IMG/VR virus record: IMGVR_UViG_3300042350_002797 | Coordinates: 124,001 to 188,000 of that record | Length of the DNA: 64,000 bases | Direction: 5' to 3' (one strand) | In this document: positions 19,192 to 62,222 of the stretch, one piece after another | How the letters are laid out: each line of letters begins with the position of its first letter | Position numbering within the stretch: the first letter of the stretch is position 1 | Notes under the pieces: model-generated | Database searches by the model: none | Seen by the model: only the letters and a program-made list of their open reading frames with translations | What the model was told of the DNA's origin: nothing | Program-made: the position numbers and the translations under genes

Positions 19192-19216
19192 GTGATACTA
19201 TTATAGTACAAAAAAA

Positions 19217-21033: not shown

Positions 21034-21342
21034 TTATTTAATCTTTCTTTGTTTTAAAAATTGGTTAGTTTTTTTAATAATATCTTTTTTAATTCTTTCT
21101 GTATCTAGTTTAAAGTCTACGTTGTCTATTTCGTTTTCATAAGAGGTAAACCATTCTTTGATTTCTGATTCAAATATTTCTTTACTTTTCCCATTAAGAC
21201 TTACCTCCCAAGTTTTACCATTTTTAAAAGTGACTATTATTGAATGTAAATAATCAATTGGTATTGCATTAAATGAAATATCTTCAAATATTTCGGGCCA
21301 ATGTTTTACAATATCTTCGGGAAATTTTTTCCCTTTAGTCAC
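21034..21342 (-). CDS. Hypothetical protein
   Basis: 102-aa ORF in a coupled operon. Confidence 0.6.
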   Translation of the reverse strand: MTKGKKFPEDIVKHWPEIFEDISFNAIPIDYLHSIIVTFKNGKTWEVSLNGKSKEIFESEIKEWFTSYENEIDNVDFKLDTERIKKDIIKKTNQFLKQRKIK

Positions 21343-45912: not shown

Positions 45913-46236
45913 ATGAAGACTAAAACTATTGCTTTTTCTTTAATTTTTGCTGTTAACAGTGTGTGGGCCAATGCTTGGGATAATCCAAATACGCCATTTG
46001 ACACCAAAAGAAACTTTACTGAATCGTCTACTATTCGTTGGGTGACAGTGGATAATGTACAAGAAGCCTGTGAAAAAGAATCACGTAGCAGAGGCTATAA
46101 TGGTTTTGGTATGAGTGTGTTGGCTTGCTCTTTTTTCAAAGGAGATCAGTGTACAATCATTACTGGTAAGAAAACAACCATGCACACTTTAGGACATGAA
46201 GTTAGACACTGTTTTCAAGCAGATTGGCACAAATAA
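45913..46236 (+). CDS. Secreted small HExxH protein (minimal zincin-like)
   Basis: Signal peptide MKTKTIAFSLIFAVNSVWA; four Cys; TLGHEVRHCF. Confidence 0.7.
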   Translation: MKTKTIAFSLIFAVNSVWANAWDNPNTPFDTKRNFTESSTIRWVTVDNVQEACEKESRSRGYNGFGMSVLACSFFKGDQCTIITGKKTTMHTLGHEVRHCFQADWHK

Positions 46237-46260
46237 AAAAGCCCCTTGCGGGGCTTTTTT
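46235..46260. terminator. Bidirectional intrinsic terminator
   Basis: AAAAAAGCCCC-TTGC-GGGGCTTTTTT between convergent genes. Confidence 0.92.
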
Positions 46261-47098
46261 ATTGAATAGATTTTATATCTACCCCTTTTTGTTTAAGAAG
46301 TATAAGAGCTTGAGCCATTTCTCCACCTGAAAGATCTCCCTTCAGGCCTTGCATTAATGTTTCGCCTGTGTATTCTTGATATTGTTTAGATACACTTTGA
46401 TACTGTTTAGCATCTTTGATTGATTGTAAGACTTTAAATACTGCTTTATTATCTGTTCCGATTCCTTCTATGGCATTTTTTAATTGCCATGCGAGGGACT
46501 TATCTGTTTTCCAAAGTGCAGGTTCTGTCTTAGTTGCATTTGGATCTGTCTTGGTTGCATTTGGATCTGCCATAGGTGCTTGTCCGGATACAGGAAATCC
46601 GTGTTTTTTAGCAATATCTGGATATTTCTTCATAGCTTGTCTAGTTTTGCTATTTGGACCTCCAAGATTTCCGTCAATGCCGTCTTTGTTGGAACCATAA
46701 GTGCCTAAGTCTGCACCTGCTGCTTTTAGATCTTTCTGCATTTTCATAACTGCAAATTGATTTCCAGCGAGAGGTTTATCTCCACCTGTTTTGGTTTTTT
46801 CTCCAGGCATAGGCTGTCTTGGTACTTCCGGCATGCCTGGTTTATCAGATCCGGGAGTAACTGTTGAAGTAGAGTATTTGCTAATTTCATTACTAACACT
46901 GTTGTAACGATCTATTTCTCTATTTAGATCTTGAATGTTTGGGTAATTTGTATATCTTGAATCTTTGCCGAGGTCTTTAAGTTTCAAATATAATGTATTA
47001 AGTTCTGTTTGCTCAGCTGATGAAATTACTTCATATACTGGAGCGTCTATTCGATTTTCAATTTCTGACAATTTTGTCATTAAGTCTTTAATATTCAT
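46259..47098 (-). CDS. Putative internal virion protein: peptidoglycan-binding domain + annexin-like repeat
   Basis: VMKMQKDL..AG.DLG..G...DGIDG.LG...T..AM (PG_binding_1-like); LAWQLKNAIEGIGTD..AVF.VL...Q...+...Y...TG..L...LKGDLSG (annexin-like). Confidence 0.7.
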   Translation of the reverse strand: MNIKDLMTKLSEIENRIDAPVYEVISSAEQTELNTLYLKLKDLGKDSRYTNYPNIQDLNREIDRYNSVSNEISKYSTSTVTPGSDKPGMPEVPRQPMPGEKTKTGGDKPLAGNQFAVMKMQKDLKAAGADLGTYGSNKDGIDGNLGGPNSKTRQAMKKYPDIAKKHGFPVSGQAPMADPNATKTDPNATKTEPALWKTDKSLAWQLKNAIEGIGTDNKAVFKVLQSIKDAKQYQSVSKQYQEYTGETLMQGLKGDLSGGEMAQALILLKQKGVDIKSIQ

Positions 47099-47113
47099 TT
47101 TAGTCCTCTGATC

Positions 47114-48193
47114 TTATTTTCTTGCTGTTCCAGCATATTTCATAATCATAGCTGCATCGTCTGTGCCATAAGGATCAGTATATTCTGGTTCAGGCTCAGA
47201 CTTCTTAGGGTCTGGAACTATTTTTTGATCAGGCACTATTCGTTTTTTAGGATCAGGCTGAGGATTTTGACCACTTGGTTCCTTCATTAATGACTTATCT
47301 AACAGCTCTTTAAATCTAGCCACTGCTGTTTTAAGTTCCTCGGGAGTCATTAACGGATCCTCGCCTGCTGGCTGCTCTGCTTGCCCAGTTGGCTTTTCTG
47401 GCTCTGCTGGTTTTTCAGGAGTAGGTGCTGGAGTTGCTTCTGCACCTTTTTGTAATGCCATATAACGATCTACTAGAGTTTTGACATCAGGGCGTTGATC
47501 TTTCATCGGTCCTAGCTTGCTCATTACATCTGTAAGTTGCTTTTGTTCTTCAGGGCTTAAATCTTTTAATGCTTCAAAAACATAACCAAAAGATTCTACT
47601 AGTTTTCTAGAAATACTTTCGATAGTTACTGGTGCTGCATTTTTACCTTCTGCTTTGTCTAATAGTTTTATTGCAGTAGCAATGTCTTTAGCTAATTCGT
47701 CTTGCTCTTTCTTTCCTGGAGGAAGGTTTATACCTATATCTGTATTTTGACCTTGTGTAGGTTCAGGTTCTGGACTCTTTTGATCGACACCAGTGTAATT
47801 ACTGGTTTTCTTCTGGTCATCAGTTGGTAATGTATCCATTGTACCAGGTTCTTGTTTTTCTTGATTAAAAGTTTTCCATGTGACACCTTCTGGATAATCA
47901 ACAGGCTTGCCATTAACAAACTCTCCGTCGATACTAGTAGGATTAACAGCAGATCTGTCTTCAGGATCAAATTTAGCAAAGTTCCATTTAGCAATTTCTT
48001 GTCTACCTTGATTAGGATACTGCCCTTGTTTCATATGATAGAAATTTCCATCGCTGTGTAACATTAAGGATGTTCTTCCACCGAAGTTATTTTTATGAAA
48101 ATGTGTAGGTTTAAATTCTGTAGGTGCTGCTTCAGATAGTGTCGCACCACTTTCAATTTCTTGTAATTTTGTAATTAAGGATTGTAAGTCCAT
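47114..48193 (-). CDS. Putative internal virion protein, modular and P/E/K-rich
   Basis: N-terminus MDLQSLITKLQEIE parallels the neighbour's MNIKDLMTKLSEIE; LSE|A and VFE|A candidate cleavage sites. Confidence 0.6.
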   Translation of the reverse strand: MDLQSLITKLQEIESGATLSEAAPTEFKPTHFHKNNFGGRTSLMLHSDGNFYHMKQGQYPNQGRQEIAKWNFAKFDPEDRSAVNPTSIDGEFVNGKPVDYPEGVTWKTFNQEKQEPGTMDTLPTDDQKKTSNYTGVDQKSPEPEPTQGQNTDIGINLPPGKKEQDELAKDIATAIKLLDKAEGKNAAPVTIESISRKLVESFGYVFEALKDLSPEEQKQLTDVMSKLGPMKDQRPDVKTLVDRYMALQKGAEATPAPTPEKPAEPEKPTGQAEQPAGEDPLMTPEELKTAVARFKELLDKSLMKEPSGQNPQPDPKKRIVPDQKIVPDPKKSEPEPEYTDPYGTDDAAMIMKYAGTARK

Positions 48194-48215
48194 ATTTCTT
48201 TCCTATTATTATTCT

Positions 48216-48296
48216 TGCTCACTTTTAAGTTACACGGTAGCGAATCGTTTCACTAAGGCAGCAGCCGCCTACGCACCATAGCGGTCCTAAGGTGTG
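48216..48296 (-). ncRNA. Candidate structured RNA (unknown class)
   Basis: 42/81 GC in an AT-rich intergenic gap; three stem-loops, a GAA/GUA E-loop-type internal loop, and a possible pseudoknot. Confidence 0.55.
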
Positions 48297-49061
48297 TTAT
48301 TTTGGAACACAGTTTGGAACTGTGCGTCCGTTCTTTTGTTTTGTTCCTACAGGCTTGTAACCTTTCCAACATGGATTATCTTTCGGATCTCTAAGACCTT
48401 CTTCAACTTCTTTACATCTACAGCCTTTTACATGGTCTCCAGGAATAGGACTTTTACTATCATTTGGAGGCGCTGTGTAATATTCTTCTAATTGTGATAT
48501 CTGTTCGTCTAGTTGATTTTTTAGTTGTCTAATATTGTCTAAAATATCTTCTACTTGTACAACAGGTTTACCTTGAGTATTTGAAGCTCTGCCTGTGCGG
48601 CTAGCTTTCATTTTATCTCCACTACCGCCAATGTGTTTACTAGCTAAACTTAGTCCTGCCTTACGAGGGCCTTTACTTGCTTTGCCCTGTTTAACTTCGC
48701 CACCTTTGGATAGATAATCTTTTACTGCGGAATCTACGTCAGCAGTTTTTTCGTTAATTTTTCTAGAGATTCTTTCTGCTAGTTGTTTGGCACGGTCTTT
48801 ATATCTTTCTTCTGATTCGGATATTTCGTCTTCTATTTTTTTAAAGTATTTTCCGATCATGCTTGGTTTAGCGTCTTTTTCTTTATTAAGAACCGGATTA
48901 GTAATATCTTTTTGATAGTGTTGAACAGCCATTAATTCTGCTGTACTTAGTCTGTTGTTTGATTCATTAACAATAGACAAAAACTTCTCCATATCTTTAG
49001 AAGAAGTTTTGTTAGGTGCCGACGCTCCATCTACAGCAGCTAAGAATTTTTTCATATCCAT
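48297..49061 (-). CDS. Putative internal virion polyprotein
   Basis: Modules separated by VNE|S, INE|K, VEE|G; C-terminal PCWKGYK.VG.K.K.G+.VPNCVP module. Confidence 0.6.
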   Translation of the reverse strand: MDMKKFLAAVDGASAPNKTSSKDMEKFLSIVNESNNRLSTAELMAVQHYQKDITNPVLNKEKDAKPSMIGKYFKKIEDEISESEERYKDRAKQLAERISRKINEKTADVDSAVKDYLSKGGEVKQGKASKGPRKAGLSLASKHIGGSGDKMKASRTGRASNTQGKPVVQVEDILDNIRQLKNQLDEQISQLEEYYTAPPNDSKSPIPGDHVKGCRCKEVEEGLRDPKDNPCWKGYKPVGTKQKNGRTVPNCVPK

Positions 49062-49064
49062 AAT

Positions 49065-50090
49065 TTATTTCTTAGCCGTTTTAGCTGCATCCTTCCAATC
49101 TTTAGCATTAGGTGCTTTAGGATGATTTTTGTCTCTACTAGTTCCTGCTGCTTTACGTTTGTTTACATTATAGTAAAGGCCTTTCTTAACTGCTTCTTCC
49201 ATAGGACACTCTTTTAAACCATGTACTGGACAGCTCTTGCCCTCCATAGTTTGATTACACCCTTTTGACATTTCGTTTGTTTTCTTACGATAAACATCTA
49301 CAGGGCCATGCTTACTACCTTTTTTAGGTAGATGTACTTCGTCGGGAGGTGATGGTAATTTGTCACCACCTTCTTTTATTTTCTTGTCTTTAAGAGCCTT
49401 TTTCATTGGCTCTTTTTTGTTACCATCTTTGTCGAAGTCAAGATAATCTGGCTTAGACGATTCTTTAACTTTTTTATCCTTCTTCGGCTTTTCATCTTCC
49501 TCGTCCTCTTTATCTGCTGCTTGTTTACTACCGCCATAGCGGGATCCTTTTTTAATTCCACTACCGCCACTAGGTTGAGGGCCTCGTTTTTTCTCAAGAT
49601 ACTTTTGCATCTCTTCAAAGCCTTCTTTGACATCCTTTTCTTTGTCATCGTCTTTCTGTTTGCTGCCACCGTATGCCTTGCCTTGCTTTTTTCCAGCACC
49701 GCCGCTTGGCTTCGGTTTATCTTTTTCTTTCATATACTTTTCTAAGTCGTCAAATCCTTCTTCGACTTTGTCAGTTTGTTTTTTAACTTTTTCAGCTTGA
49801 CGCTTTGCTTCCATTAATTTTTGTTGAAATGCAAGACGTACACTTTCACTGTAGACATCGCTGTTTTCTAATTTATCGCCATATTCGCTAGCTTTCATTT
49901 CATATTCCATAAAATGGTATACACTAGCAATATAATCAGCTGCTTTAGTAATCTTAGCCTGCACCCAACCTTCTAGTTCTTGACCTTCTCGGATCATTTT
50001 AAATAATTTCATAGAATAGTTGGCTAATTTGTATAGATCAGCACGGGCCATTGCAGCTTCGTGATTATCTGGACGTCTATCTAAATTCAT
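49065..50090 (-). CDS. Putative internal virion polyprotein, K/E-rich
   Basis: LEGWVQAKITKAADY domain; duplicated GF..+.KY.....P.PSGG.G.K.G..YGGSKQ modules after VEE|G and VKE|G; PDYLDFDKDG; CPVHG; GLYYNVNKR modules. Confidence 0.65.
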   Translation of the reverse strand: MNLDRRPDNHEAAMARADLYKLANYSMKLFKMIREGQELEGWVQAKITKAADYIASVYHFMEYEMKASEYGDKLENSDVYSESVRLAFQQKLMEAKRQAEKVKKQTDKVEEGFDDLEKYMKEKDKPKPSGGAGKKQGKAYGGSKQKDDDKEKDVKEGFEEMQKYLEKKRGPQPSGGSGIKKGSRYGGSKQAADKEDEEDEKPKKDKKVKESSKPDYLDFDKDGNKKEPMKKALKDKKIKEGGDKLPSPPDEVHLPKKGSKHGPVDVYRKKTNEMSKGCNQTMEGKSCPVHGLKECPMEEAVKKGLYYNVNKRKAAGTSRDKNHPKAPNAKDWKDAAKTAKK

Positions 50091-50111
50091 GAGTTTTTCT
50101 CCAATACGTTA

Positions 50112-50118
50112 TATTTAT
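50112..50118 (-). promoter_or_regulatory. Late-promoter-like ATAAATA
   Basis: CGATAAATAT about 22 nt before GGAG-ATG(50090); identical CGATAAATAT at 56943-56952. Confidence 0.55.
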
Positions 50119-50372
50119 CGTTTGACGGCACCACCGCCGAATATGTTATTTTTTATATCTAATGCATTCTTAGCAGTACCGTCTGGGTTCTTAACTTGAA
50201 CAGTTTTGGGAACACTAGGTGCCTTAGTTCCAGATTTACCCGGAGTTCCTGTGTAGCTTTTTTTGCCTCGGTCTTTACCTATAGCAACATGGGGACTGAC
50301 CACTGAAGCAATATTACCGGCACTAGTAGCACCAGCAGTGGCAGTTTCTCCTAATAGTTCCCTTAAACGCAT
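50115..50372 (-). CDS. Small putative internal virion protein
   Basis: Leader MRLRELLGE followed by a basic G/K/T-rich peptide. Confidence 0.6.
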   Translation of the reverse strand: MRLRELLGETATAGATSAGNIASVVSPHVAIGKDRGKKSYTGTPGKSGTKAPSVPKTVQVKNPDGTAKNALDIKNNIFGGGAVKR

Positions 50373-50374
50373 GA

Positions 50375-51010
50375 TTAGCCCTCAAATGCATCTAATGCAT
50401 CATTCCAATGTTTAATACGATCTTCCATGCCAATCGTGCCACCGTTGATTCTTTTACTTAATAAGACAATGTCACCTTTGTCGCAAATTGCATTTAGTTG
50501 ATTCTTATACCAGAACCAGCAAGCACTAAGGGTCGCATATTCTGGAGTTCTTAGTAAGTCCGGATCATTTGCTAATGTATCGTCGCCGAATAAATCTCGA
50601 CTGCATTTAGTATAATTGTCACGTCCAGTTAATTGTAGAATACCTCTACCGCGGAATTTCCAACCATCTCCGCTAGATTCAGGCCCATTGCCCATACGAC
50701 TACTATAGATTTTGTTAGCGATCTTTTCAGGTTTACGCTCATAGGCTTTTGCTGTAGCATCGTCCGGAAAGTATTTTCCAAATAATCCACGAAGCCCTTT
50801 AGCTCCGTAGTTTAAATTTTCTTGTAGTGCAGTAAAATCGGCACTTTCGTGTTGACATTGTGCAATAAATCCTGCTACTCTAGCAGGTGTAGTAATCATA
50901 AATTTTGGTAAGTACATATTAAACGCATTATACCAAAGCTCTAATTCTTTGTTTTTATGTACTACTTTTTTAAGATTGTTTAATGTAAAATCAAATTCAA
51001 ATCCACTCAT
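50375..51010 (-). CDS. Glycoside hydrolase family 19 endolysin
   Basis: R.A.F+AQC.HES, ENLNY, GDGWKFRGRG..QLTGR.NY, SACWFW, RINGG..G..DR. Confidence 0.93.
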   Translation of the reverse strand: MSGFEFDFTLNNLKKVVHKNKELELWYNAFNMYLPKFMITTPARVAGFIAQCQHESADFTALQENLNYGAKGLRGLFGKYFPDDATAKAYERKPEKIANKIYSSRMGNGPESSGDGWKFRGRGILQLTGRDNYTKCSRDLFGDDTLANDPDLLRTPEYATLSACWFWYKNQLNAICDKGDIVLLSKRINGGTIGMEDRIKHWNDALDAFEG

Positions 51011-52830
51011 TTGCTACTCCTTTTTTTACCTTGCCTCATATTTATTTGCCAATGGGCTAATTGTTTTTTACGAGGACTTGCTGTGTCACTGCTTCTAATT
51101 TTTTTTAGTGTTGAGATACTGGATTTTTTTGGAATCCCGTGTCTTGCACTATCGCCTTTATCTTGAGGATTTTTACCATCTGCAAAATTTTCATCAATAT
51201 CGTGTGTATCTAATCCTAGTTGTTTAAGATATTTGATATATTCGTGTTCCAGAGGTTCACTGCCAAATGATAATACAGTTTGAGGAGGTCCTTGACCGAA
51301 ATCGTGTTTACCTAACCCTTTTAAATTACTAATATGCTGACCTAATTTATACCAGTCATATGTGTCACTAACATCTACTTTTACAGTGCCTTTAGGCCAT
51401 GGAATTAAATCTCCTTCTTTAATAGGAGTATTCATAGTTTTTAGGTAATTTTGAAATATTCCGTGACGTTTTTGTAAACCAGCTAGTCCAGGATTAATAT
51501 ACCTAGTTACAGTTCTTGTATCAGTAAAGTTTTTAACATTAGGCTGGACTCTATTTTTCCAGAACCACACACTGGCTTTGGCAGCGATTTCTGGTTTTTC
51601 TAATAATTCGGGTTTGTTATCCAAAGGAAGACCTAGTGCTTGACCGGCTTGAGTATAATTCCATCGACCTGTTAATTGAATAAACCCGCGACCTTTAAAT
51701 CTTTGTCCGTCTCCAGACATAGTATTACCTAACTCTTTGGCCTTATCAGGACTAAATTGTTTATCGTATTTTTTTAAAAATTCGTCAGATGTACCAAATT
51801 CTACAAGTGTTGCATAATTTGCTGTTTCGTGTGCGCACTGTGCTAAAAATTGTGCAAGCTCTTTGCCTTTGATGCCTGCCTTTAAAGCAAAATTTCTTAG
51901 CGTAGATTCTAAAGGATTGCCAGTTATTGGAGCAGGTTGAGCTGCCTGACCTGATATTTTTTTGTCTACAGAAGTAGGTTGTTTTTTCTTTTGTATATTA
52001 GAAATTAAATCACCAATTGGGTCGCCTTTAACATTACCATATGAATCTAATTTTTCTTTAATAGATTCAGCTTCTCCGCCACCATCTCCGCTGTATCCAC
52101 TGTCGTATCCATAACCACCGTAAGGTCCAGGACCCCATGCTCCATAACCGCCATAAGTATTTCTACTAAAAAGTGAATTTTGTTTTCGTTGACGAGATTT
52201 TTTCTTTCTACGGCTTTCGCTTACTACAGCAACACTACCAGAAGATTTTACAAAATATGCATCAAAATCTACATTAGGGTATTCTTGTTCTAAACTTTTG
52301 AATACTTTTAAATTTGTCATCGAATCATCAATAAGATTCACTCTGTTATACTTGCCGGTATTTAGATACTTTCTTACCCATACGGCTTTTTTATAAGCCG
52401 GCGGTTCGTCACCAGGTAAATTGCCTGCACGATGAACATGTATACGACTCATATCAATACCATACTTTTCAAACGTACTTAAAAATTTATCTTTATCATC
52501 AAAGTCGGCACGAGCAGTTAACATAATTACTTTGGTATTAGCTGCCCGGTCTAGGATACGTTTTAATGTGTTGATCATTGGTTTAATTGGTTCGCTTTCT
52601 TTAGCAAACTTTTCAGCACTACGAAACTCGCCGAAGTCAAATTCTTCACCAGGTTGTAATTCGTAATTATTAAATTCTTGATTAGTTAAACTACGTACTA
52701 CTTTACCGTCTTTGATTACTTTAATCTGAGCAGTAGTATGAAATAATGTATCATCAATGTCGAAGATTGTTAAGCCCATATTACCCTTAGGCATTTCTTG
52801 TCGTTCGGTAATAATATCTAATATTTTCAT
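51007..52830 (-). CDS. Multidomain protein: HAD-family phosphatase + GH19 lysozyme + small modules
   Basis: FDIDDTL, LTAR, IDD (HAD); AQFLAQCAHET, GDG.RFKGRG.IQLTGR.NY (GH19); domain borders at VSE|S, IKE|K, IKE|G, IDE|N. Confidence 0.85.
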   Translation of the reverse strand: MKILDIITERQEMPKGNMGLTIFDIDDTLFHTTAQIKVIKDGKVVRSLTNQEFNNYELQPGEEFDFGEFRSAEKFAKESEPIKPMINTLKRILDRAANTKVIMLTARADFDDKDKFLSTFEKYGIDMSRIHVHRAGNLPGDEPPAYKKAVWVRKYLNTGKYNRVNLIDDSMTNLKVFKSLEQEYPNVDFDAYFVKSSGSVAVVSESRRKKKSRQRKQNSLFSRNTYGGYGAWGPGPYGGYGYDSGYSGDGGGEAESIKEKLDSYGNVKGDPIGDLISNIQKKKQPTSVDKKISGQAAQPAPITGNPLESTLRNFALKAGIKGKELAQFLAQCAHETANYATLVEFGTSDEFLKKYDKQFSPDKAKELGNTMSGDGQRFKGRGFIQLTGRWNYTQAGQALGLPLDNKPELLEKPEIAAKASVWFWKNRVQPNVKNFTDTRTVTRYINPGLAGLQKRHGIFQNYLKTMNTPIKEGDLIPWPKGTVKVDVSDTYDWYKLGQHISNLKGLGKHDFGQGPPQTVLSFGSEPLEHEYIKYLKQLGLDTHDIDENFADGKNPQDKGDSARHGIPKKSSISTLKKIRSSDTASPRKKQLAHWQINMRQGKKRSSK

Positions 52831-53468
52831 TTCACCAGTCCAGCTAATTGTTTTATTCTATGTAAATCTTTTACAGTCTCGGCTACTCGAGGTTTTATAG
52901 TAGGTGCCGCTGCTACCGGTGGTTTAGTTGTAGATGCCACGGGTGCCGGCACAGCAGCGGGTGCCTGTGCTACTGCCTGAGGTGCAGCAGGTGTGCCTTT
53001 AAATTTTGCCATTGCTATATCAACTTCTTGTTTTATAGTATTGGTAATATTACCTACCAAAGTATTAAGTCTTTGTTTAGTGCCTTGCGGATCAGCAACT
53101 AAATCTTGTTCTAAGGTTACTAGTTCTCCTTTAGGACCTGCAAATGCTTCTGCATATAGTTCTCGAGCCATGGCATACGCTGTGGCAGGAATAGTAGTAA
53201 CAAACGAGCCAAATGTACTAGCTACATCTAATCCTGCTCCTACAATATCGCCACCAGTAATACTTTGCCCACTGTTCCATATGGCTTTTAATTTATCATA
53301 GGCACCTTTTAATGCAACTACAGTGCCTACAACTGGAATACTTTTAGCAACTATACTAGCTATTTTTGAACCTATTTTTTGTTTGACTATACCGGCTAGA
53401 GCTGTGCTTGCGAGTTTAGGCACTCGCTGTACAGCAGTATTTTCATGAATAATTTGGTAATCAGTCAT
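52827..53468 (-). CDS. Putative virion protein with hydrophobic helical hairpin
   Basis: Likely start ATG 53468; KSIPVVGTVVAL...GDIVGAGLDVAS; C-terminal LHRIKQLAGL. Confidence 0.6.
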   Translation of the reverse strand: MTDYQIIHENTAVQRVPKLASTALAGIVKQKIGSKIASIVAKSIPVVGTVVALKGAYDKLKAIWNSGQSITGGDIVGAGLDVASTFGSFVTTIPATAYAMARELYAEAFAGPKGELVTLEQDLVADPQGTKQRLNTLVGNITNTIKQEVDIAMAKFKGTPAAPQAVAQAPAAVPAPVASTTKPPVAAAPTIKPRVAETVKDLHRIKQLAGLVK

Positions 53469-53685
53469 TTTTCCTAATACCTGATCCAATAGGTTTTTCA
53501 CCGGTAAGTTTGGGCAAGCTAAACCACAGTTGAAACCATTCAGGAGTTCCTGGTTTAATATTATGCTTCTTCATAAGACGACCTTTTTCGTCGCCAGTAA
53601 TACTGATATTGCTCCCCTCCCAGACATGCCATCCTTTATATTCATTTATACCAGCAAGTTTTTTAATTTGATCTAATTCATCCAT
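53461..53685 (-). CDS. Small putative virion protein
   Basis: MDELDQIKKLAGINE leader; IKPGTPEWFQLWFS. Confidence 0.65.
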   Translation of the reverse strand: MDELDQIKKLAGINEYKGWHVWEGSNISITGDEKGRLMKKHNIKPGTPEWFQLWFSLPKLTGEKPIGSGIRKND

Positions 53686-54118
53686 TTTTTAAACTTGCCC
53701 TTAACATCCACCCATGTTTACGATGTGCATCTATTCTGCCTGCTACAAAATCACTAAATCCATATTCTCCATTTTTTTCAGATTCTTGAAATACTAATTT
53801 GAGAACTTTAATAATTTTTTCGTTGTCTTCTAATAATTCTTGTAACATTGATTCGGGCGGAAGAATATTAGTTTCGTCGTCGATTTGTGTTAGCATACTA
53901 AATCGTTGAAAACTACCTGGAACATATGTGCCTTGACTACGAATTTGTTCTGCAAATACGTCTATACTACCATATACTTCTTCATAGATAGCACCAAAAA
54001 GATCATGTAATTCTTTAAAATGAATGCCTTCGACGTTCCAATGAAAGTTGTGTGCTTTTAAATAGAAACTAAAAGTACTGGCAAATGCTACTTTACTGGC
54101 TTTTTGTAATTCTTCCAT
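53678..54118 (-). CDS. dps: Dps / DNA-binding ferritin-like protein
   Basis: KAHNFHWNVEG..F..LH.LF..IYE.....D..AE.IR, H.K..WML. Confidence 0.93.
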   Translation of the reverse strand: MEELQKASKVAFASTFSFYLKAHNFHWNVEGIHFKELHDLFGAIYEEVYGSIDVFAEQIRSQGTYVPGSFQRFSMLTQIDDETNILPPESMLQELLEDNEKIIKVLKLVFQESEKNGEYGFSDFVAGRIDAHRKHGWMLRASLKNG

Positions 54119-54127
54119 TGTTGATCC

Positions 54128-54832
54128 TTAGACTAATTTAAATGCTTTTAAATTTTTTCTTGGTGTATTCTTGTTGACATCTACTGTGGTATTTTGTTTT
54201 GTAATTATACCCACTCCAGCGGCTTCTTCTTTTTTAACTTTGGCTTTTTTCTTTGCTTCCTTTTCTCTTTCTTTTTCTACTTGTGGAAACAAATAATGTG
54301 CAACTAAATCAAAATATGGTTGGCCAGCTATTTCTGTATTCGCATCAACACCAGCAGCTTTTGTAAAAGCATCTCGATCTCCTGCTACTACGGCATTTCT
54401 TAAATCTGTAGCACTGCTTAATCTTGGTGTGGCTTGGGGCTGTATGTTTGAAAATTTATAAAAACCATGAGGACCTTCTTTTCCGTTATACTGAACCAGT
54501 GTTTTAATTACCCACTCTTCATCTGTGTATACATTAAGAAGAATATCTCCATACTCTTTATAAACTTTGCTGGCTAGGGTAAGCCAACTTGTTTCTGCAA
54601 CAATATTTCCTTTGATAGGAGGAAAGATTTTTTTCATTACTTCTACTTTTACTTTAAAAGGTAATGGATCCTTAGGACCTTCTGTACTTTGATTAGTACC
54701 CACAAACCAATAATTATTTTCAGAAGCCATTTTCCAAGCCGCTCTATGACCTTGGTGCGGAGGATTAAATCTTCCAAAAATAATACCTACGGATTCAGAT
54801 TGGGCATTTTCAAACAATTCTCTTAGTAGCAT
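54128..54832 (-). CDS. Cytidylyltransferase-like (HxGH) nucleotidyltransferase
   Basis: FGRFNPPHQGH, DPL....K, SSATDLR; leader MLLRELFE. Confidence 0.85.
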   Translation of the reverse strand: MLLRELFENAQSESVGIIFGRFNPPHQGHRAAWKMASENNYWFVGTNQSTEGPKDPLPFKVKVEVMKKIFPPIKGNIVAETSWLTLASKVYKEYGDILLNVYTDEEWVIKTLVQYNGKEGPHGFYKFSNIQPQATPRLSSATDLRNAVVAGDRDAFTKAAGVDANTEIAGQPYFDLVAHYLFPQVEKEREKEAKKKAKVKKEEAAGVGIITKQNTTVDVNKNTPRKNLKAFKLV

Positions 54833-54833
54833 T

Positions 54834-55172
54834 TTATTTCTCGTCGTATTGTTTTGTTTTAAAATTTTCCATCTCTGTTTCTAAAATTTTTGAACATATG
54901 TCATCTATAGCAGATTTTTCTAGATCTTTGTCTAAATTTTTAACAGGAAATTTTTCTTTATATGCACTATAAGCATGTTTAACTATAGGACTGAGACTAG
55001 AAGAGTCTAATTCTTGACCTCTGTCATGATGCAATTTCATTTTTATAATAGAAGGATAATAATGTCTTCTATAGAAATCTGGATCGTTGTTCATAAAAAA
55101 GATTAGATCATCTTGAAGATCATATTCTTCTACATTAAATTTTTCAGGATTAACTAATTCGTCTATTCTCAT
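54834..55172 (-). CDS. Hypothetical protein
   Basis: Likely start ATG 55172 (MRIDEL); DDL.FFM.ND..FYR. Confidence 0.65.
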   Translation of the reverse strand: MRIDELVNPEKFNVEEYDLQDDLIFFMNNDPDFYRRHYYPSIIKMKLHHDRGQELDSSSLSPIVKHAYSAYKEKFPVKNLDKDLEKSAIDDICSKILETEMENFKTKQYDEK

Positions 55173-55176
55173 AATT

Positions 55177-56925
55177 TTACCATGCTCTGCAAGACCAGTA
55201 CCGTGCTTTCCACCGTGGACCAGGATTAGCACAATTGTGTCTAGCTCTAAAACTTTTACGACGTTTTGGATTAGACTTTTTAATAGTCATTTTTTTGTCA
55301 CCAAAATTCACTTTAACTACTTTGCCGTTAGGTTTTTTAACATATACTTTAGATTTTTTAACATCTCCAGCCATACGTTTGCCTAGAGGAACTTTACGTC
55401 CTTGATATTCTGCTTCTGTTAAATCATCATGGAATGTACAACCATGAGCTTCTAATAATTTAAGTGTAGTTGCATCTGCTTCGATCAATACTGATTCTGT
55501 CCATTCAGCTATGACCCAAGTTTCAATGCCTTCATCCTCTGCTAATTCGATATGAAAATAATCTCCAGAACTCAACGGTCCTTCATTTTCAATCGCTTCA
55601 ATATGTTCTAAAAGACTTTTATTAGAAAGTCTTGATTCTTTAAATGAACTAGGACCTCCTGTTTGAGGATCAGGTAATTCTCTTTTGTATTGTAGTAGAG
55701 CAGCCATTTCTGGAGTATTAGGCTGTGCTTTAAATACCCAAGGGTTTAATTTGTGCATAAGTTTAAAGGCAACATCGCCATTTAACCACATAGCTTGACC
55801 TTGAGGAAGTGCTATGGCTTGGGCTATAGATTCCCAACCACTCATAGGACTATCATCCTTAGGTACTCCATCGCCTTTATAGGCTGCACCAGATTGTCCT
55901 CTTACATCGCTTACTAATTTAGCAAAAGGATGCGTCTGTGTATCCAAAGTTCCAATATTGTCAGGATCGTACCAACTTCCGCCTTGCTCGCCACTGGCTG
56001 CTTGTTTAAGAAAACCTTGCATTCTATCTAATTGTTTTTGATAAATCTGTGCAGCCTGTGTCTTACCTTGTTTGGTAAGGTTATCAATAGTAGCTTTATA
56101 TTTTGCAATTCCTGCCTCATAAGATTTTATATCTTGTTGAACCTCTTCAGGGCTACTGCCTTGAGCACCTATACCTGAAGATACTTGACTTACATCCTTA
56201 TATTCAGCTTTAAGCTGTGCGGCTGTGGGTAGCAAAAGTTTAAATTTGGTTTGAGCTGCTGGTGCTGCTGGTGCTGCTGGTGCTGCTGGTGCTGCTGGTG
56301 TCGGAGCAGCGTTAGGTCCTACTCCTGGAGTAGGACCTTCATTTAGTATATCTAAATATTTTCTTAATGACATTTTATTAGATTCCTTCATTAACACACC
56401 TAGCTCTTGTTGCGATGGTTTTCTACCAACGAAACTTTGTTTATCTGGTTCTTGTCTTTTATCTTCTGGATCGGGACCAGTTACGCTATAAATTTTGTTA
56501 CCACCTTGTTCAACATCCTTGCCTGCACCGCCAAATCCTATACCTTGATCCATCGAAACAGTATTAGCACCAACAGAAGTACTAGCACTAGTAACTGTGC
56601 TCTGATCTGGACGCTGTTTAGTAGACATTTTAATGTCGCCTACCTGCACATCTGTATTAACAAGGCCGGTTTGAAGATCAATCTCTTTTCCAAATCCGCC
56701 TAGATTAGGAGTGGCATATTTTATTGCCTTGCCGGATTTATCATATGTAAATTTGCCAAATGCTCCAGCATATGATCTTGTACCATCGGGATTAGAATAG
56801 ACTTTTGCGCCTTCATCTTCTCCGTCTGTTGGAGGAAGAGCAGGAATTGGAGGTACTTTGACTTGATTAGATTGTTGTTCGTTTAAAATATCTAGATAAT
56901 TTCTAAGTATAGACCCTGAAGTCAT
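55177..56925 (-). CDS. Putative internal virion polyprotein
   Basis: LR.YLDILNE| occurs twice; LTE|AEYQG then a basic C-terminal VNFGD...RRKSFRARHNC...ARYWSC module. Confidence 0.65.
   Translation of the reverse strand: MTSGSILRNYLDILNEQQSNQVKVPPIPALPPTDGEDEGAKVYSNPDGTRSYAGAFGKFTYDKSGKAIKYATPNLGGFGKEIDLQTGLVNTDVQVGDIKMSTKQRPDQSTVTSASTSVGANTVSMDQGIGFGGAGKDVEQGGNKIYSVTGPDPEDKRQEPDKQSFVGRKPSQQELGVLMKESNKMSLRKYLDILNEGPTPGVGPNAAPTPAAPAAPAAPAAPAAQTKFKLLLPTAAQLKAEYKDVSQVSSGIGAQGSSPEEVQQDIKSYEAGIAKYKATIDNLTKQGKTQAAQIYQKQLDRMQGFLKQAASGEQGGSWYDPDNIGTLDTQTHPFAKLVSDVRGQSGAAYKGDGVPKDDSPMSGWESIAQAIALPQGQAMWLNGDVAFKLMHKLNPWVFKAQPNTPEMAALLQYKRELPDPQTGGPSSFKESRLSNKSLLEHIEAIENEGPLSSGDYFHIELAEDEGIETWVIAEWTESVLIEADATTLKLLEAHGCTFHDDLTEAEYQGRKVPLGKRMAGDVKKSKVYVKKPNGKVVKVNFGDKKMTIKKSNPKRRKSFRARHNCANPGPRWKARYWSCRAW
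56255..56299. repeat. 9-bp tandem repeat x5 (Pro-Ala-Ala linker)
   Basis: (GCTGCTGGT)5 on the + strand. Confidence 0.95.
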
Positions 56926-56965
56926 AAAAAAGCCCCTTTATGATATTTATCGTATTGGGGTCTTT
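56926..56965 (-). promoter_or_regulatory. Hairpin/terminator with a late-promoter motif in the loop and the SD in the 3' arm
   Basis: AAAGACCCC-(AATACGATAAATATCATAAA)-GGGGCTTTTTT-ATG. Confidence 0.65.
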
Positions 56966-56977: not shown

Positions 56978-57610
56978 TTAAGCTCTAACTACATTCTCTA
57001 CTTTTGTAATTGTACGCCCTAAAAACATCTTAACCATAGTGAGATTTTTGTCATCTTTGACGTAAAAATACCCCCCGCCAGGGCTATAATCCTTACATAA
57101 ATCCTTAGCAGCACGTTTTGGTAGTCTGATTTTGTTATTGTTTTTACACCATTCTACAAAGCTTATGTAATTTTGAGTAGTTGCTCCTAATGTAACTTTA
57201 AAAGCATAATCTAAGTTTTTAACCAGCACAGTGCCTTCTGTTAATTTGCTTTCGGTTTTAGGATCAGGTATTTCTACATATTTTATTTTATTCTTACAGT
57301 TTTTGACTACTATTTCTAGATCTGTTTCTGTATCAACATAGATAGTAACGAACGGAGTTTCTACTCTTGCTTGCCAGTTTTCAATTGATTCAAGAACTTT
57401 ACTTAATTTGTTGGCATGATTTTTCTCTCCTGCTGTGGCTTGCCTTGAATAGTAATATTGATCGCTGTTTTCATACATATGTTGGATCTTAATTGCGTCA
57501 GATCCGCGAAACCAGCCAGCTACTCCAGAAGTAAACACTACTTTAAATTTGTATTTGTTCTGGAATAGCTTAGTACTATACTTTACATTATGCGATTTCA
57601 AGAATTTCAT
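56978..57610 (-). CDS. Hypothetical protein
   Basis: 210 aa, last gene of the dnaJ-def-clpA unit. Confidence 0.65.
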   Translation of the reverse strand: MKFLKSHNVKYSTKLFQNKYKFKVVFTSGVAGWFRGSDAIKIQHMYENSDQYYYSRQATAGEKNHANKLSKVLESIENWQARVETPFVTIYVDTETDLEIVVKNCKNKIKYVEIPDPKTESKLTEGTVLVKNLDYAFKVTLGATTQNYISFVEWCKNNNKIRLPKRAAKDLCKDYSPGGGYFYVKDDKNLTMVKMFLGRTITKVENVVRA

Positions 57611-59840
57611 GTTCTAATACTGATTGTTTAGCTTTAGATTTAAATGTAAGTTGATCATTTTCTACAGCTATAGTGAGCACTCCACTGTTTTTTAAGTCTC
57701 CGAATAATAGCATTTTAGACAATGGTCGTTTAATTTCTTTATCAATAACACGTTGTAGAGGTCTTGCACCCATCTTCTTATCAAATCCTCGTTCGATTAA
57801 CCAATTTATAGCATCTTTATTAATCTTAAGTTTAACACCTTTTTCTCTGACTTTTTCACGTACCTCATCGATAAATTTAGTTACAATTTTACCCATAACT
57901 TCTTTTGAAAGTTTGTTAAATGTAACGATCCCGTCTAATCTATTACGGAATTCTGGAGCAAAGAATTTTTTAAGTTCTTTATCTTCGTAAGTCTTTTCTT
58001 GACTGCCGAATCCAATAACATTTTTTTCTGCTTCTTGAGCTCCGGCATTAGTGGTAAGAATCAGCACTAAATTTCTACAATCTGCACGTTTACCATTACT
58101 ACCTGTGACGAATCCATTGTCCATGATTTGTAATAAAATTGTACTTACATCTGGATGACTCTTTTCAATTTCATCCAATAATAAAACACAATTAGGATTT
58201 TCTTGAATCTGAGTAATTAGCAATCCAGCATTTTCTTCAAATCCAACATAGCCTGGAGGACTGCCGATAAGTTTACTAATACTGTGTTTTTCTTGATATT
58301 CACTCATATCAAATCGAACAAGTTTTACACCTAAGTGTTTAGATAATGCTTTGGCTGTTTCAGTTTTTCCACAACCAGTCGGCCCCATAAACACAAAGCT
58401 ACCTATTGGCTTGTCATCGGATTTCAGTCCAGCTCGGCTTACAAGAATTTTATCTACAATATCTGTAATAGCAGTATCTTGTCCGTATACATCTTCTTTA
58501 ATTTTACTTTCTAAGTTAGCAAGATTATTAGTTTCGCTTTCTGCAATTGTTTCTGTAGGTATGTTAATCATCTTGCTAAGTTCAAACTCGATCTCAGTAG
58601 CAGTAATAGTTCTACTATCAGCTAATTTTAAATTAAACCGACTAGCCGCACAATCAATAAGATCGATAGCTTTATCAGGCAATTTTTTATCTGCTTGATA
58701 TTTTACACTTAGTTTGATTGCTGCTTGTATGGCGTCGTCTTTAATTTTAACATTATGATGTTGTTCATAATATTTTTTAATACCTTTAAGTATCTGTACA
58801 GTCATTTCTGATGTAGGTTCATCTACACTAATTCTTTGGAATCTACGCATCAATGCACGATCTTTTTCAAAATACTTACGATATTCTTCCCATGTTGTAC
58901 TGGCCACTACCTTTATATTGCCTTTACTCAATGCCGGCTTCATCATGTTACTCAAATCGTTAGCATTGTTATTTGCAGATCCTGCACCACTTACCATGTG
59001 TGCTTCGTCAATAAACAGAATAGTTTTGCCTTTCTTTTCTAAACTTTTCAGTACTGCCTTGAACCTTTCTTCAAAATCGCCTCGGTATTTACTGCCTGCT
59101 AACATAGCACTAATATCGAGATTGTATACAGTATATTTTTTTAGAAATTCTGGTACAGCACCTTTTACTATATTATAGGCAAGGCCTTCTGCTATAGCAG
59201 TTTTGCCTACTCCAGGATCTCCTACCAATAATACATTACTTTTTGTTCTGCGACCCAAACAAAGTGCTACATTTTCAAGTTCTTCTATTCTACCAATTAC
59301 TGGATCTATTTTATTCTTTTTAACTTCGTCGTTTAAATTAACAGTAAATGCTCTAAGAGCACGATCATTGTGATGTGACTCCACACCGGCTTCCTCTTCA
59401 ATTTCAACTACTTCATTATTCAAATAATCACTAAATTTATCTTTATCAATACCTGCTTGCTGTATATAATAAAAGGCATAACTTCTTTTTTCAGACATCA
59501 TGGCTAAAAACACATCTGCAGATTCAATTTTTTGTCTGCCGTTAAACAACACCTGTGTGAAAGATTTATTTAGAATACGTTCAACTGCTTGTGTTTTTCT
59601 AGGTTTTACATCCTGCTGCTCGGATACTATGTTTTGACATTTATTTTTTAAATAGTGCTCGAGATTTTTCTTTAGAAATTCAGGATCTGCTCCGTAGCCA
59701 GTTAAACAATTTGAAAAATTTTCCTCGCATAGCATAGCGAATAGCAAATGCTCTATGGTCAAATAATCGTGTTTTAATTGTGTAGCTACTTTGATTGATT
59801 TTTCAAATACTAGTTGAAGTTCGTTGCTTGGTTCTACCAT
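57588..59840 (-). CDS. clpA: ATP-dependent Clp protease ATP-binding subunit ClpA
   Basis: Clp-N EHLL; GDPGVGKT / FIDEAH; GPTGCGKT / LLDEIEK; IGF ClpP-docking loop; GARPL; no ClpB middle domain. Confidence 0.95.
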   Translation of the reverse strand: MVEPSNELQLVFEKSIKVATQLKHDYLTIEHLLFAMLCEENFSNCLTGYGADPEFLKKNLEHYLKNKCQNIVSEQQDVKPRKTQAVERILNKSFTQVLFNGRQKIESADVFLAMMSEKRSYAFYYIQQAGIDKDKFSDYLNNEVVEIEEEAGVESHHNDRALRAFTVNLNDEVKKNKIDPVIGRIEELENVALCLGRRTKSNVLLVGDPGVGKTAIAEGLAYNIVKGAVPEFLKKYTVYNLDISAMLAGSKYRGDFEERFKAVLKSLEKKGKTILFIDEAHMVSGAGSANNNANDLSNMMKPALSKGNIKVVASTTWEEYRKYFEKDRALMRRFQRISVDEPTSEMTVQILKGIKKYYEQHHNVKIKDDAIQAAIKLSVKYQADKKLPDKAIDLIDCAASRFNLKLADSRTITATEIEFELSKMINIPTETIAESETNNLANLESKIKEDVYGQDTAITDIVDKILVSRAGLKSDDKPIGSFVFMGPTGCGKTETAKALSKHLGVKLVRFDMSEYQEKHSISKLIGSPPGYVGFEENAGLLITQIQENPNCVLLLDEIEKSHPDVSTILLQIMDNGFVTGSNGKRADCRNLVLILTTNAGAQEAEKNVIGFGSQEKTYEDKELKKFFAPEFRNRLDGIVTFNKLSKEVMGKIVTKFIDEVREKVREKGVKLKINKDAINWLIERGFDKKMGARPLQRVIDKEIKRPLSKMLLFGDLKNSGVLTIAVENDQLTFKSKAKQSVLEHEILEIA

Positions 59841-60336
59841 TATATTTCCTTTGTTTTTTTAAAGCTAAATCTAATTTTAACCTACTAATGCGATCAATAA
59901 AGCAAATACCATCTAAATGATCTAATTCGTGCATGAAGCATCTAGCGTCAATGCCTGTTAGTTCTATTATATGCTGATTATTATCTCTGTCAAGAAACTC
60001 GACTAGAATAATTTTAGGTCGAGAAACTTTAAAAAATAATCCAGGAAAACTTAAACATCCTTCCTCTTCCAATTCAACTTCTTGGCTGACTTTTATTATT
60101 TTAGGATTAAAAACAGCAAAAGGCGTGTTCACATCTTTTATATTATGAGGATACATTACAAATACTCTGGCATTTACACCTACCTGATTAGCACTTAACC
60201 CTATGCCATTTTCTTCAGCCATAAGTGTAACCATAGATTCTTCTAGTATTAAGGGATCTATAATAGGATTAGAAAAATCAAAATCGTCTAATCTTTTATC
60301 TAAAATTTCATTAGGATAGTGAATTAAGTTGAGCAT
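59803..60336 (-). CDS. def: Peptide deformylase
   Basis: GIGLSANQ, EGCLS, HELDH. Confidence 0.95.
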   Translation of the reverse strand: MLNLIHYPNEILDKRLDDFDFSNPIIDPLILEESMVTLMAEENGIGLSANQVGVNARVFVMYPHNIKDVNTPFAVFNPKIIKVSQEVELEEEGCLSFPGLFFKVSRPKIILVEFLDRDNNQHIIELTGIDARCFMHELDHLDGICFIDRISRLKLDLALKKQRKYNGRTKQRTSTSI

Positions 60337-61141
60337 TTATATTTTCAATTTGTTTCAAGATTGTTTGATCATTTATTGTAGGAGTTATTACTTCTACAAC
60401 TACAATTAAATTGCCTGACCTGCCAGAAGAAAGATTAGTGAAGCCTCTTCCTTTACTGCTAAATTCAGTTCCAGAATTTACACCAGCTCGTATTTTTATT
60501 GGCATAACAGTTCCATCCAAACATTTGATTTCTTTAGTACATCCTAAAATTGCTTCGAATGAGTTTATTTGTATAATTTTACACAAGTCATCATTCCGAC
60601 GCATCCATTCTGGATCATTTTCTACCATGATCTGTACATTTAGATCGCCAGGAGGAAAATTACTGTAACTATCGTCACCCAGGCTAGGATGTCTGATAGT
60701 TTGTCCGGATTGTATACCAGCAGGTATATCTATAGTAACTTCTTTATTTTTTCCTGAAGGAGTTCTGTATTTTGCTATCATTTGAGCTCCTAGATAACTT
60801 TGTTTGAATGTAACATTCATTCTTATAGTTAGATCTCTATTTCTAGGAGCTCGTTGTTGAGCAAAGCCGTGTCCGAAATGAAATCCAAAAATATCTTCGA
60901 AGTTTGGAAAACCAGACCCTGATCTAATGTTTATAAAAGGATTCGTACCGTTTAATTCGGCATCATATTGTGATCGTTTATTAGGATCACTAAGTGTATC
61001 ATATGCTTGAGATATTTCTTGGAATTTTTTATTATCGCCACCACGGTCAGGATGATGTTTCATGGCCAATTTTTTATAGGCCTTTTTTATATCATCCTGA
61101 CTGGCTTTTTCATTTACTCCGAGTATTTCATAATAGTTCAT
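60311..61141 (-). CDS. DnaJ-class chaperone (CbpA-like, no Zn finger)
   Basis: YYEILGV...HPD J-domain; C-terminal DnaJ domains (IPAG, GDL, GRG). Confidence 0.93.
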   Translation of the reverse strand: MNYYEILGVNEKASQDDIKKAYKKLAMKHHPDRGGDNKKFQEISQAYDTLSDPNKRSQYDAELNGTNPFINIRSGSGFPNFEDIFGFHFGHGFAQQRAPRNRDLTIRMNVTFKQSYLGAQMIAKYRTPSGKNKEVTIDIPAGIQSGQTIRHPSLGDDSYSNFPPGDLNVQIMVENDPEWMRRNDDLCKIIQINSFEAILGCTKEIKCLDGTVMPIKIRAGVNSGTEFSSKGRGFTNLSSGRSGNLIVVVEVITPTINDQTILKQIENINAQLNSLS

Positions 61142-61952: not shown

Positions 61953-62222
61953 TTATTTTAACTGATCTGCTATACTTTTTTGTTCTTTATACCATTCTTG
62001 CCATGCTTCGTATTTAATTTTAAGTTCGTAATACAGTTTCGAATTAGCATTAGTAGTTTGAATAATATCGCTCATTTCTATTTTTTTATCTGCGGGCAAT
62101 TTGTTAAGATCCGCAGCAGGAGTCATCAAACTTGGCGGTGCATCGGGGAATTTCATCACAATAGGAACCGCAGTGCTAGAGCATCCTGATAAGAATATAC
62201 ATAATAATAAAATTAATCTCAT
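61953..62222 (-). CDS. o-spanin (Rz1-like lipoprotein)
   Basis: Lipobox LSGC, Pro-rich FPDAPPSLM.P, AWQEWY; overlaps the end of the i-spanin gene. Confidence 0.75.
   Translation of the reverse strand: MRLILLLCIFLSGCSSTAVPIVMKFPDAPPSLMTPAADLNKLPADKKIEMSDIIQTTNANSKLYYELKIKYEAWQEWYKEQKSIADQLK

Follow-up and report, generated by a model that had tools for sequence, protein, structure and literature searches.

Why should neighbouring phage genes with unrelated products begin with the same kind of short peptide, and why should the longer products be divided at the same kind of joint? The question is raised by a block of 13 tightly packed genes, all on the minus strand, located at positions 46259-56925 of the 64,000-nucleotide stretch analysed here (the window), which comprises bases 124001-188000 of one 364,554-bp virus record, IMGVR_UViG_3300042350_002797. 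Nine of the 13 genes carry a short N-terminal leader. Eight of these leaders end in a hydrophobic residue, any residue and Glu (h-x-E), and the ninth lacks a clean site. The first-pass annotation read the leaders as capsid-targeting signals and the internal h-x-E joints as prohead protease sites within polyproteins that are packed into the head for injection. Every leader and junction string that it quoted is present in the minus-strand open reading frames (ORFs), and LR.YLDILNE does recur within one protein of 582 amino acids (LRNYLDILNE and LRKYLDILNE). Leaders that it did not list are MNIKDLMTKLSEIE (46259-47098), MRIDELVNPE (54834-55172) and MTDYQIIHE (52827-53468).

Several independent lines of sequence evidence support the core of that reading, namely that T4-like targeting leaders and prohead-protease sites join exchangeable modules. 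We consider it likely that the block consists of late-transcribed genes for head-internal cargo of a jumbo phage of the T4 superfamily. By sequence, the phage is placed as Rak2-like within that superfamily because of the identities of two of its proteins. Its family-B DNA polymerase shares 45-49% identity with the enzymes of the jumbo phages Phosso and Atu_ph07, and with those of 121Q-like coliphages the figure is about 45%. Its major capsid protein (MCP; Pfam Gp23, E = 3e-101) is 67-73% identical to the MCPs of Phosso, Vibrio phage 2.275.O, CBB, GAP32 and PA5oct.

Leaders conserved as peptides

The leaders can be described by the N-terminal pattern M[RKNLYI][ILFATV]x[EDQ][ILFVY], which was written post hoc, after the data had been seen. 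It fits 22 of the 445 called genes, compared with 3.3 expected from its internal frequency and 6.0 +/- 2.3 in column shuffles, and five of the 22 are among the 13 genes of the block (Fisher p = 2e-4). An h-x-E whose Glu falls at residues 8-12 is found in 14 of the 22 pattern genes versus 51 of the 423 others (12%; p = 7e-8). In total there are about 25 leader genes in roughly 10 places of the genome, and thousands of related metagenomic protein clusters, such that the phenomenon is not specific to the block.

T4 internal proteins have targeting leaders of 10-19 residues, in which targeting depends on the early residues and cleavage on the last three, and phages related to T4 bear such leaders on varied cargo (PMC9026906). 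The T4 leaders that we retrieved are MKTYQEFIAE/A (IPII and IPIII), MKTFKEF...ITE/A (IPI), MAKINELLRE/S (gp24) and MELITELFDE/D (Alt), with the joint after Glu marked by a slash. Those of the present phage are built alike, as in MRLRELLGE/T, MLLRELFE/N, MKILDIITE/R and MKSFKEYLTE/S (the last at genome position 35580). They are common to non-homologous proteins, not only within its own genome but also across about 20 metagenomic loci with conserved synteny and in Melnitz, a marine phage. Across orthologues of 45-100% identity, cargo is exchanged and leaders are retained.

One might suspect chance, given that h-x-E and starts composed of Met, Lys or Arg, and a hydrophobic residue are common in Lys/Glu-rich, helix-prone phage proteins. 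The 12% of ordinary genes with an h-x-E at the leader position and the post hoc definition of the pattern both favour this suspicion. However, the shuffles and Fisher tests largely refute it, as does the retention of leaders in orthologues whose cargo has changed, and we judge an origin in composition alone to be very improbable.

Another possibility is that the shared starts are DNA-level mobile cassettes, each a unit of promoter, ribosome-binding site and first codons, and that the likeness of the peptides is a by-product. Cassettes of this kind reportedly mediate module shuffling in T4-type phages, and the block is clearly mosaic. We nevertheless find this reading unsupported, and the least probable of those considered, because identity across the 30 nucleotides upstream of 25 leader genes is 0.31, which is about random, and because conserved leader residues are encoded by varied codons (AGA, CGA, CGT and AGG for Arg; TTA, CTA, CTT and TTG for Leu). 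Moreover, the junction motif occurs mid-gene as well. Leader conservation is therefore at the level of the peptide and not of the DNA. A degenerate DNA pattern for the leaders gave 12 hits versus 3 in the control for the phage's own genome, 3 versus 4 for CBB, and few hits for Melnitz, T4 and sequence fragments, and it is too crude to serve as a survey.

A gp21-family protease and its predicted sites

The genome encodes its own Peptidase_S77 protease (207 aa; genome 84691-85314; Pfam PF03420, E = 1e-25, above the cut-off), which is 35% identical to T4 gp21 and retains the His-Pro and VSSRG motifs. The head gene cluster is T4-like, with portal, small core gene, protease, scaffold and MCP, and also includes a 194-aa gene with weak glycosyltransferase-like matches and a gene for a 291-aa acidic protein. 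The 79-aa gene between portal and protease, which occupies the position of T4 gene 67, starts with MILRELF. T4 gp21 cuts after Glu in L/I-x-E (PMC9026906).

The sequence [ILV]xE[GSAN], for which the first-pass annotation had suggested an enrichment test at domain borders, occurs 23 times in the block compared with 10.0 +/- 3.0 times in residue shuffles (2.3-fold). The rest of the genome has 386 occurrences versus 331 (1.17-fold), a mild excess that would be expected if composition contributed. The block is enriched in the sequence, with the limit that the enrichment is strong in only some of the proteins. The residue that follows Glu in the h-x-E sequences of cargo is shifted towards G/A/S/T, and this is the sole shift.

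Modules exchanged at Glu joints

The 607-aa polyprotein (51007-52830), with matches in Pfam, PHROG and PDB, illustrates how these joints relate to domains. The leader MKILDIITE/R is followed by a HAD-type phosphatase-like domain, VSE/S, a basic Gly/Tyr-rich linker and IKE/K, and then by a GH19 domain, IKE/G, a 75-aa domain, IDE/N and a 60-aa basic module that we call NFADG. There are 1101 clusters in this family, which is mosaic, with lengths of 350-945 aa, and which gains or loses GH19, LysM, deaminase, HExxH-peptidase-like and GNAT-like modules. Among 119 homologues, the breakpoints of homology cluster at E205, E259, E472 and E547, all of which are inter-domain h-x-E sites, and none are found at E68, E344 and E411, which are h-x-E sites within the HAD and GH19 domains. 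Of the ends of high-scoring segment pairs (HSPs) in this family, 46% are at most 3 aa away from the Glu of an h-x-E, versus an expectation of 9%, with the limit that the HSPs depend on each other. The NFADG module is preceded by Glu in 110 of 110 cases and by [ILVM]xE in 108 of 110, in 51 different upstream contexts. Since these contexts are unrelated, the invariance of the Glu also argues against chance.

The 341-aa polyprotein (49065-50090) has a conserved helical head of 110 aa, behind which five or six short basic modules are lined up that all close in K-V/I-x-E ahead of G or S. Its Atlas structure model is mostly of low confidence (pLDDT 0.54). In seven orthologues (240-623 aa), the same head is combined with other selections of modules through the same joints, and these proteins contain 5-7 sites compared with 0.8-2.4 expected.

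The first gene of the block encodes the 582-aa polyprotein (55177-56925). Its leader (..LRNYLDILNE) ends with LNE at residue 16 and is followed by a 180-aa part, a second leader copy (LRKYLDILNE, residues 187-196, with LNE/GP at residue 196), a 308-aa part and, after LTE/A, a basic, Cys-rich C-terminal module of 78 aa (nucleotides 55180-55413). In the related locus L005, one protein (L005_9102) consists of a leader and this C-module only, and in L006 another (L006_9180) consists of a different leader and the C-module. The same module forms the whole of a stand-alone 79-aa gene, gp13, in Pelagibacter phage Aegir, and is free-standing in Pelagibacter, Roseobacter and Flavobacterium phages and in archaeal spindle viruses.

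In 20 related metagenomic loci, the block is retained between a ClpA-like gene and DsbA/polymerase genes. A similar arrangement is found in Melnitz (L030), a cultured, T4-like phage of marine OM43 bacteria (Methylophilales) with a genome of 141 kb, where a run of leader genes extends over record positions ~12200-21700. Its 650-aa nucleotidyltransferase polyprotein shares two modules with the window, namely a 33-aa CW..NCVPK module after FGE/E and the 582-aa C-module after MME/S. Melnitz is a possible experimental model.

A probable cargo protein that resembles the capsid arm

The 85-aa protein (50115-50372) has the leader MRLRELLGE/T and a basic mature part of 76 aa (isoelectric point 10.4), and its sequence after the leader is TATAGATSAGNIASV. 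The first 15 of these residues are almost a copy of the N-terminal arm in the mature form of the phage's own MCP (genome 82397-83566; L023:2398-3567), whose residues 37-56 read ..KYLAE/SATGGATSAGNVATL (in shorter form ..LAE/SATGGATSAGNVA). The corresponding MCP sequence of CBB is ..LRE/SATAGATSAGNIATL (shorter form ..LRE/SATAGATSAGNIA), which matches the 85-aa protein at 13 of 15 positions. When aligned with T4 gp23, this MCP stretch lies close to where the mature T4 protein starts, 13 alignment positions past its first residue. Judged by these alignments, the predicted 85-aa cargo protein shares the predicted cut-site context of the MCP, the one substrate whose processing is a hallmark of the family. 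The likeness could reflect extended recognition by the protease, or the protein could be a capsid-binding mimic.

There are 1787 clusters in the 85-aa family, and all of the 37 members that were aligned have the Glu at residue 9 (E9). The corresponding module, which we call TATAG, is preceded by [ILVF]xE in 120 of 120 database homologues. It lies behind a 9-aa leader in most loci, and is internal, as the last module of proteins of 178-279 aa, in L010 and L017 (after LDE) and in L006 (after LSE).

A C-terminal peptide and a late-promoter-like motif

A second peptide, E..R-I/M-K-x-L-A/S-G-L, occurs four times in the genome compared with 0.2 expected, always in cargo genes. Two of the four copies are at the extreme C-terminus, one is N-terminal and one is internal. 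C-terminal occurrences are found at window positions 52827-52880, at genome positions 291845-292849 and 292860-294770, and in polyproteins of L009, L010, L012, L017 and L021, and there is a variant ending in ..RMKQFLTRLNG. All seven conserved C-terminal peptides from this phage and its relatives stand behind x-x-E followed by S, N or T, and position P3 is hydrophobic in six of the seven. Perhaps this RIKxLAGL-type peptide is a removable C-terminal targeting signal. The C-terminus of T4 Alt is also trimmed by gp21 (PMC9026906).

The word most enriched upstream of genes is ATAAATA, which is found in 43 such regions compared with 1.9 expected. It is avoided overall (12 in the window versus 43 expected), and 55 of its 69 copies in the genome are within 80 nucleotides of a start. 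Copies are situated 5-40 nucleotides upstream of many structural genes, including sheath, fibre and terminase-region genes, and also precede three leader genes outside the block. Positions in the window include 3342, 19180, 25629, 50112, 51039, 56944 and 61937. Three genes of the block have a minus-strand copy 18-28 nucleotides upstream, and these are the 582-aa gene (56944-56950; 18 nucleotides), the 211-aa GH19 gene (51039-51045; 28 nucleotides, within the 3' end of the 607-aa gene) and the 341-aa gene (50112-50118; 21 nucleotides). The exact T4 late promoter TATAAATA, than which ATAAATA is one base shorter, occurs once in the window compared with 12.9 expected. ATAAATA is probably the core of the late promoter. 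A perfect sigma-70-type promoter is located ahead of the DsbA-like gene and marks the end of the block.

Proposed route into the head and other destinations

The motifs, the protease gene, the modular make-up and the promoter words are direct observations, and from them we infer targeting, cleavage, location in the head and ejection. The leader, an N-terminal amphipathic peptide of 8-21 residues (Met, basic, hydrophobic, x, Glu/Asp, hydrophobic, and finally h-x-E), would act like the capsid-targeting sequence of T4 and draw its protein into the prohead's scaffolding core, and the C-terminal E..R-I/M-K..L-A-G-L peptide may likewise target some proteins. The gp21-family protease would then cut after Glu in h-x-E, thereby removing the leaders and splitting the polyproteins. 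The predicted small products are basic, with isoelectric points of 9-11, and would probably lie on the packed DNA, and free enzymes would be the other products. The enzymes from the block would be the HAD-type phosphatase, the GH19 wall hydrolase and the HxGH nucleotidyltransferase, and cargo encoded elsewhere in the genome would include HExxH peptidase-like, ligase-like and SGNH/cell-wall hydrolase proteins. At infection, the cargo would leave the head with the DNA. Ejection proteins of other phages open peptidoglycan, and wall-active head cargo would parallel them. An anti-defence or takeover role of the cargo is speculative, as is the notion that the phosphatase-like, nucleotidyltransferase and ligase-like proteins act on host nucleic acids or cofactors on entry. 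In support of a head location, T4 internal proteins are basic and DNA-associated (PMC9026906), and the related coliphage 121Q gives a bubblegram typical of an internal head protein (PMC7247149).

An alternative is that the leaders and h-x-E joints are real and serve another destination or process, involving neither prohead targeting nor cleavage by a gp21-type protease. The proteins might be assembled into the tail, the baseplate or an ejection complex that spans the envelope, the signals might be recognized by ClpA-like/ClpP proteins of the phage, or the joints might be flexible linkers that tolerate recombination. Genes for a ClpA/B-like ATPase, a peptide deformylase and a DnaJ-like protein flank the block in every relative, wall-active modules (GH19, LysM, peptidoglycan-binding and SleB-like) would also suit a tail or lysis role, and some modules are free genes in viruses unlike T4. 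Against this reading, the motif fits both the known specificity of the encoded protease family and the MCP maturation site itself, a leader is also found on the small gene inside the head-morphogenesis cluster, and the leaders resemble the experimentally defined head-targeting leaders of T4. We therefore regard another destination as unlikely, and delivery into the prohead remains our preferred explanation.

Several observations weigh against packaging and cleavage in the head. A canonical leader is missing from four of the 13 proteins, namely the Dps-like, 211-aa GH19, 341-aa and 254-aa proteins, and eight of the 22 strict-pattern leaders lack an h-x-E at residues 8-12. Among the HAD-led polyproteins (homologues P0121-P0240 of the 607-aa protein), one subfamily starts with MRASDFVKD.., where Asp replaces the leader Glu. 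In T4, Asp at this position stops processing and not targeting (PMC9026906). The excess of internal sites is carried mainly by the 341-aa protein (6 versus 0.8), several large cargo proteins have no such excess, and h-x-E density is not raised in cargo relative to elsewhere (1.74 versus 1.81 per 100 aa). An automated comparison of BLAST HSP starts with h-x-E positions gave a weak result (18 of 109 versus a null of 10%), because HSP edges are fuzzy and many derive from truncated ORFs, and module-anchored counts were used in its place. The invariant Glu could also be part of the fold of each module. Podoviruses, siphoviruses and archaeal viruses encode some of the modules as separate genes, and these modules are therefore not intrinsically head cargo. 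Finally, the cultured enterobacterial relatives for which virion proteomes exist have no leader expansion by a crude scan and no homologues of most block proteins.

Other genes of the block

There are nine further genes in the block, described here in the order of transcription. The 112-aa acidic protein (54834-55172) has the leader-like start MRIDELVNPE, from an ATG codon, without a clean h-x-E site, and its orthologues start with MKILEVIN, MRIRELLE or MKIQDLFE. The 234-aa HxGH-type nucleotidyltransferase (54128-54832) carries the leader MLLRELFE/N and a conserved C-terminal peptide, with a variable insert in relatives. The leader is MRLRELFE or MKLRQIFE in 18 orthologues, and C-terminal extensions bring the total length to 306-542 aa, or to 650 aa in Melnitz. 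A PHROG cytidyltransferase match (E = 1e-17) supports the assignment, Pfam and NCBIfam matches are below the cut-off, and a PDB sequence search gave no match. The domain calls of the first-pass annotation differ in strength, in that GH19 and one annexin repeat pass Pfam cut-offs and the HAD phosphatase and HxGH nucleotidyltransferase are weaker.

The next gene encodes a 146-aa Dps/ferritin-like protein (53678-54118; Pfam Ferritin, E = 4e-19) that has no leader. Its NCBIfam Dps matches are below the cut-off, and the gene is conserved in synteny. The 74-aa protein (53461-53685) has the leader MDELDQIKKLAGINE and starts with an ELxQIKKLAGI motif followed by INE/Y. In some relatives a 26-aa extension lies ahead of this motif. 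The 213-aa protein (52827-53468) has the leader MTDYQIIHE/N when translated from an ATG codon, an alternative GTG start being located at 53501, and carries behind VAE/T a C-terminal peptide that ends in RIKQLAGLVK.

The 211-aa GH19 protein (50375-51010) passes the Pfam cut-off and is leaderless. Its orthologues in L006, L010, L012 and L017 adjoin genes for membrane proteins or lipoproteins (holin/spanin-like) outside the block. For both reasons the protein is probably an endolysin and not cargo, which narrows the original proposal that the whole block is packaged. In this phage the gene is surrounded by cargo genes, and in relatives it lies near the DnaJ-like gene (compare 61953-62701 of the window), beside holin/spanin-like genes, such that it has seemingly been relocated.

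The remaining three genes are at the downstream end of the block. The 254-aa protein (48297-49061) ends with a 33-aa CW..NCVPK module after VEE/G. The 359-aa protein (47114-48193) has the long leader MDLQSLITKLQEIE..LSE/A, which is retained in orthologues of ~1000 aa (MDLRSLIDKLDTIE..). The last gene encodes a 279-aa protein (46259-47098), in which the long leader MNIKDLMTKLSEIE is accompanied by a single annexin repeat (Pfam Annexin, E = 8e-8, above the cut-off) and a peptidoglycan-binding-like segment. A 54-aa segment of this protein is 78% identical to part of L010_14480.

Neighbouring genes and occurrence

The ClpA/B-like ATPase, peptide deformylase and DnaJ-like protein are encoded beside the block at window positions 57588-61141. 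ClpP-like and DnaK-like proteins, recognized by their N-terminal sequences, are encoded elsewhere (genome 225829-226416 and 272332-274209). The sole plus-strand gene at the edge of the block (45913-46236) has conserved counterparts in L004, L005 and L006, and its 107-aa product contains an HEVRH motif and starts like a signal peptide. Farther away, consecutive plus-strand ORFs with Cys-rich starts are present at 11701-15557. One of these contains CNAACPMC, a possible radical-SAM CxxxCxxC motif.

At least 90% of sampled words from a 4.7-kb stretch of the block are present in at least 19 lake-water metagenome runs of 2018-2025, and the virus is therefore recurrent in fresh water. A megablast search of cultured phages with the block gave no match, nor did a tblastn search of cultured phages with the 85-aa protein.

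Significance and comparison with known systems

A broader proposal, which we hold tentatively and judge to be slightly short of evenly balanced, is that freshwater and marine phages of the T4 superfamily carry a combinatorial polyprotein cargo. Dozens of exchangeable mini-domains and enzymes would be strung behind N-terminal, or in some cases C-terminal, head-targeting peptides, cut by the protease in the capsid and delivered with the DNA, and one member would copy the capsid arm. If true, environmental jumbo phages have expanded the internal-protein principle of T4 into modular delivery, and the viral polyprotein strategy is used by a tailed DNA phage. The pool of injected effectors would be very large and unexplored, because two families alone have more than 1000 clusters each at 90% identity. 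Leader plus h-x-E joints would constitute a simple rule for predicting virion-delivered proteins in uncultured T4-like phages, with candidates for host takeover in the first minute, breaching of the cell wall and counter-defence. The leaders and linkers would be natural parts for loading foreign proteins into phage heads, and the 85-aa family would offer phage structural biology a case of a small protein that mimics a capsid N-terminal arm.

Leaders, gp21 sites and varied cargo are already known for T4. The literature, which was incompletely covered, yielded no account of proteolysis in the head or of targeting leaders for the Rak2-like, Melnitz-like or cyanophage groups, and none of the scale, the shuffled-module polyproteins, the enzyme cargo, the capsid-arm copy or the C-terminal motif seen here.

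The giant heads of phiKZ, 201phi2-1 and SPN3US contain many internal proteins that are cut after Glu, at several sites each, by gp175/gp245-type prohead proteases, and a role in prohead targeting is ascribed to their propeptides (PMC5694885). Several Glu cut sites per internal protein are also predicted here. However, the phiKZ-like propeptides are mostly longer than 100 residues, and their sites have a small P3 residue in the motif S/A/G-x-E (PMC5694885), whereas the present leaders have 8-21 residues and P3 is I, L, V, M or F in 120 of 120 and 108 of 110 junctions. In addition, the protease is nearer to T4 gp21, and the phage is Rak2-like by sequence.

The T4 core proteins gp22, gp67 and gp68 are built for chopping at repeated L/I-x-E sites, and the 341-aa family is similar to them in the spacing of its sites. 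The T4 fragments are mostly cleared from the head, whereas the modules described here are conserved, shuffled and also found as independent genes, which suggests that the pieces themselves are the product. Encapsulins, which are cellular compartments of the HK97 fold, take up otherwise unrelated cargo by means of a short conserved terminal peptide. Their cargo-loading peptides have another motif and involve no protease step, and only the C-terminal RIKxLAGL-type peptide invites the comparison.

The closest counterparts are the T4 internal proteins IPI, IPII, IPIII and Alt. The present system, known from sequence alone, is unlike them in having about 25 leader genes instead of four, many multi-module polyproteins with several internal sites, phosphatase-like, GH19, nucleotidyltransferase and peptidase-like cargo, and a recurrent C-terminal motif. 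No PHROG or Pfam family of internal virion proteins was matched, and the cargo is not homologous to the T4 internal proteins, such that the likeness is confined to the leader. Within these bounds, the two systems have in common the length and pattern of the leader, its h-x-E end and the protease family. They also have in common a set of unrelated, fast-evolving cargo proteins behind a shared leader, a combination of small basic proteins with an enzyme, and a location of the genes beside that for the endolysin, as ipII and ipIII adjoin e in T4.

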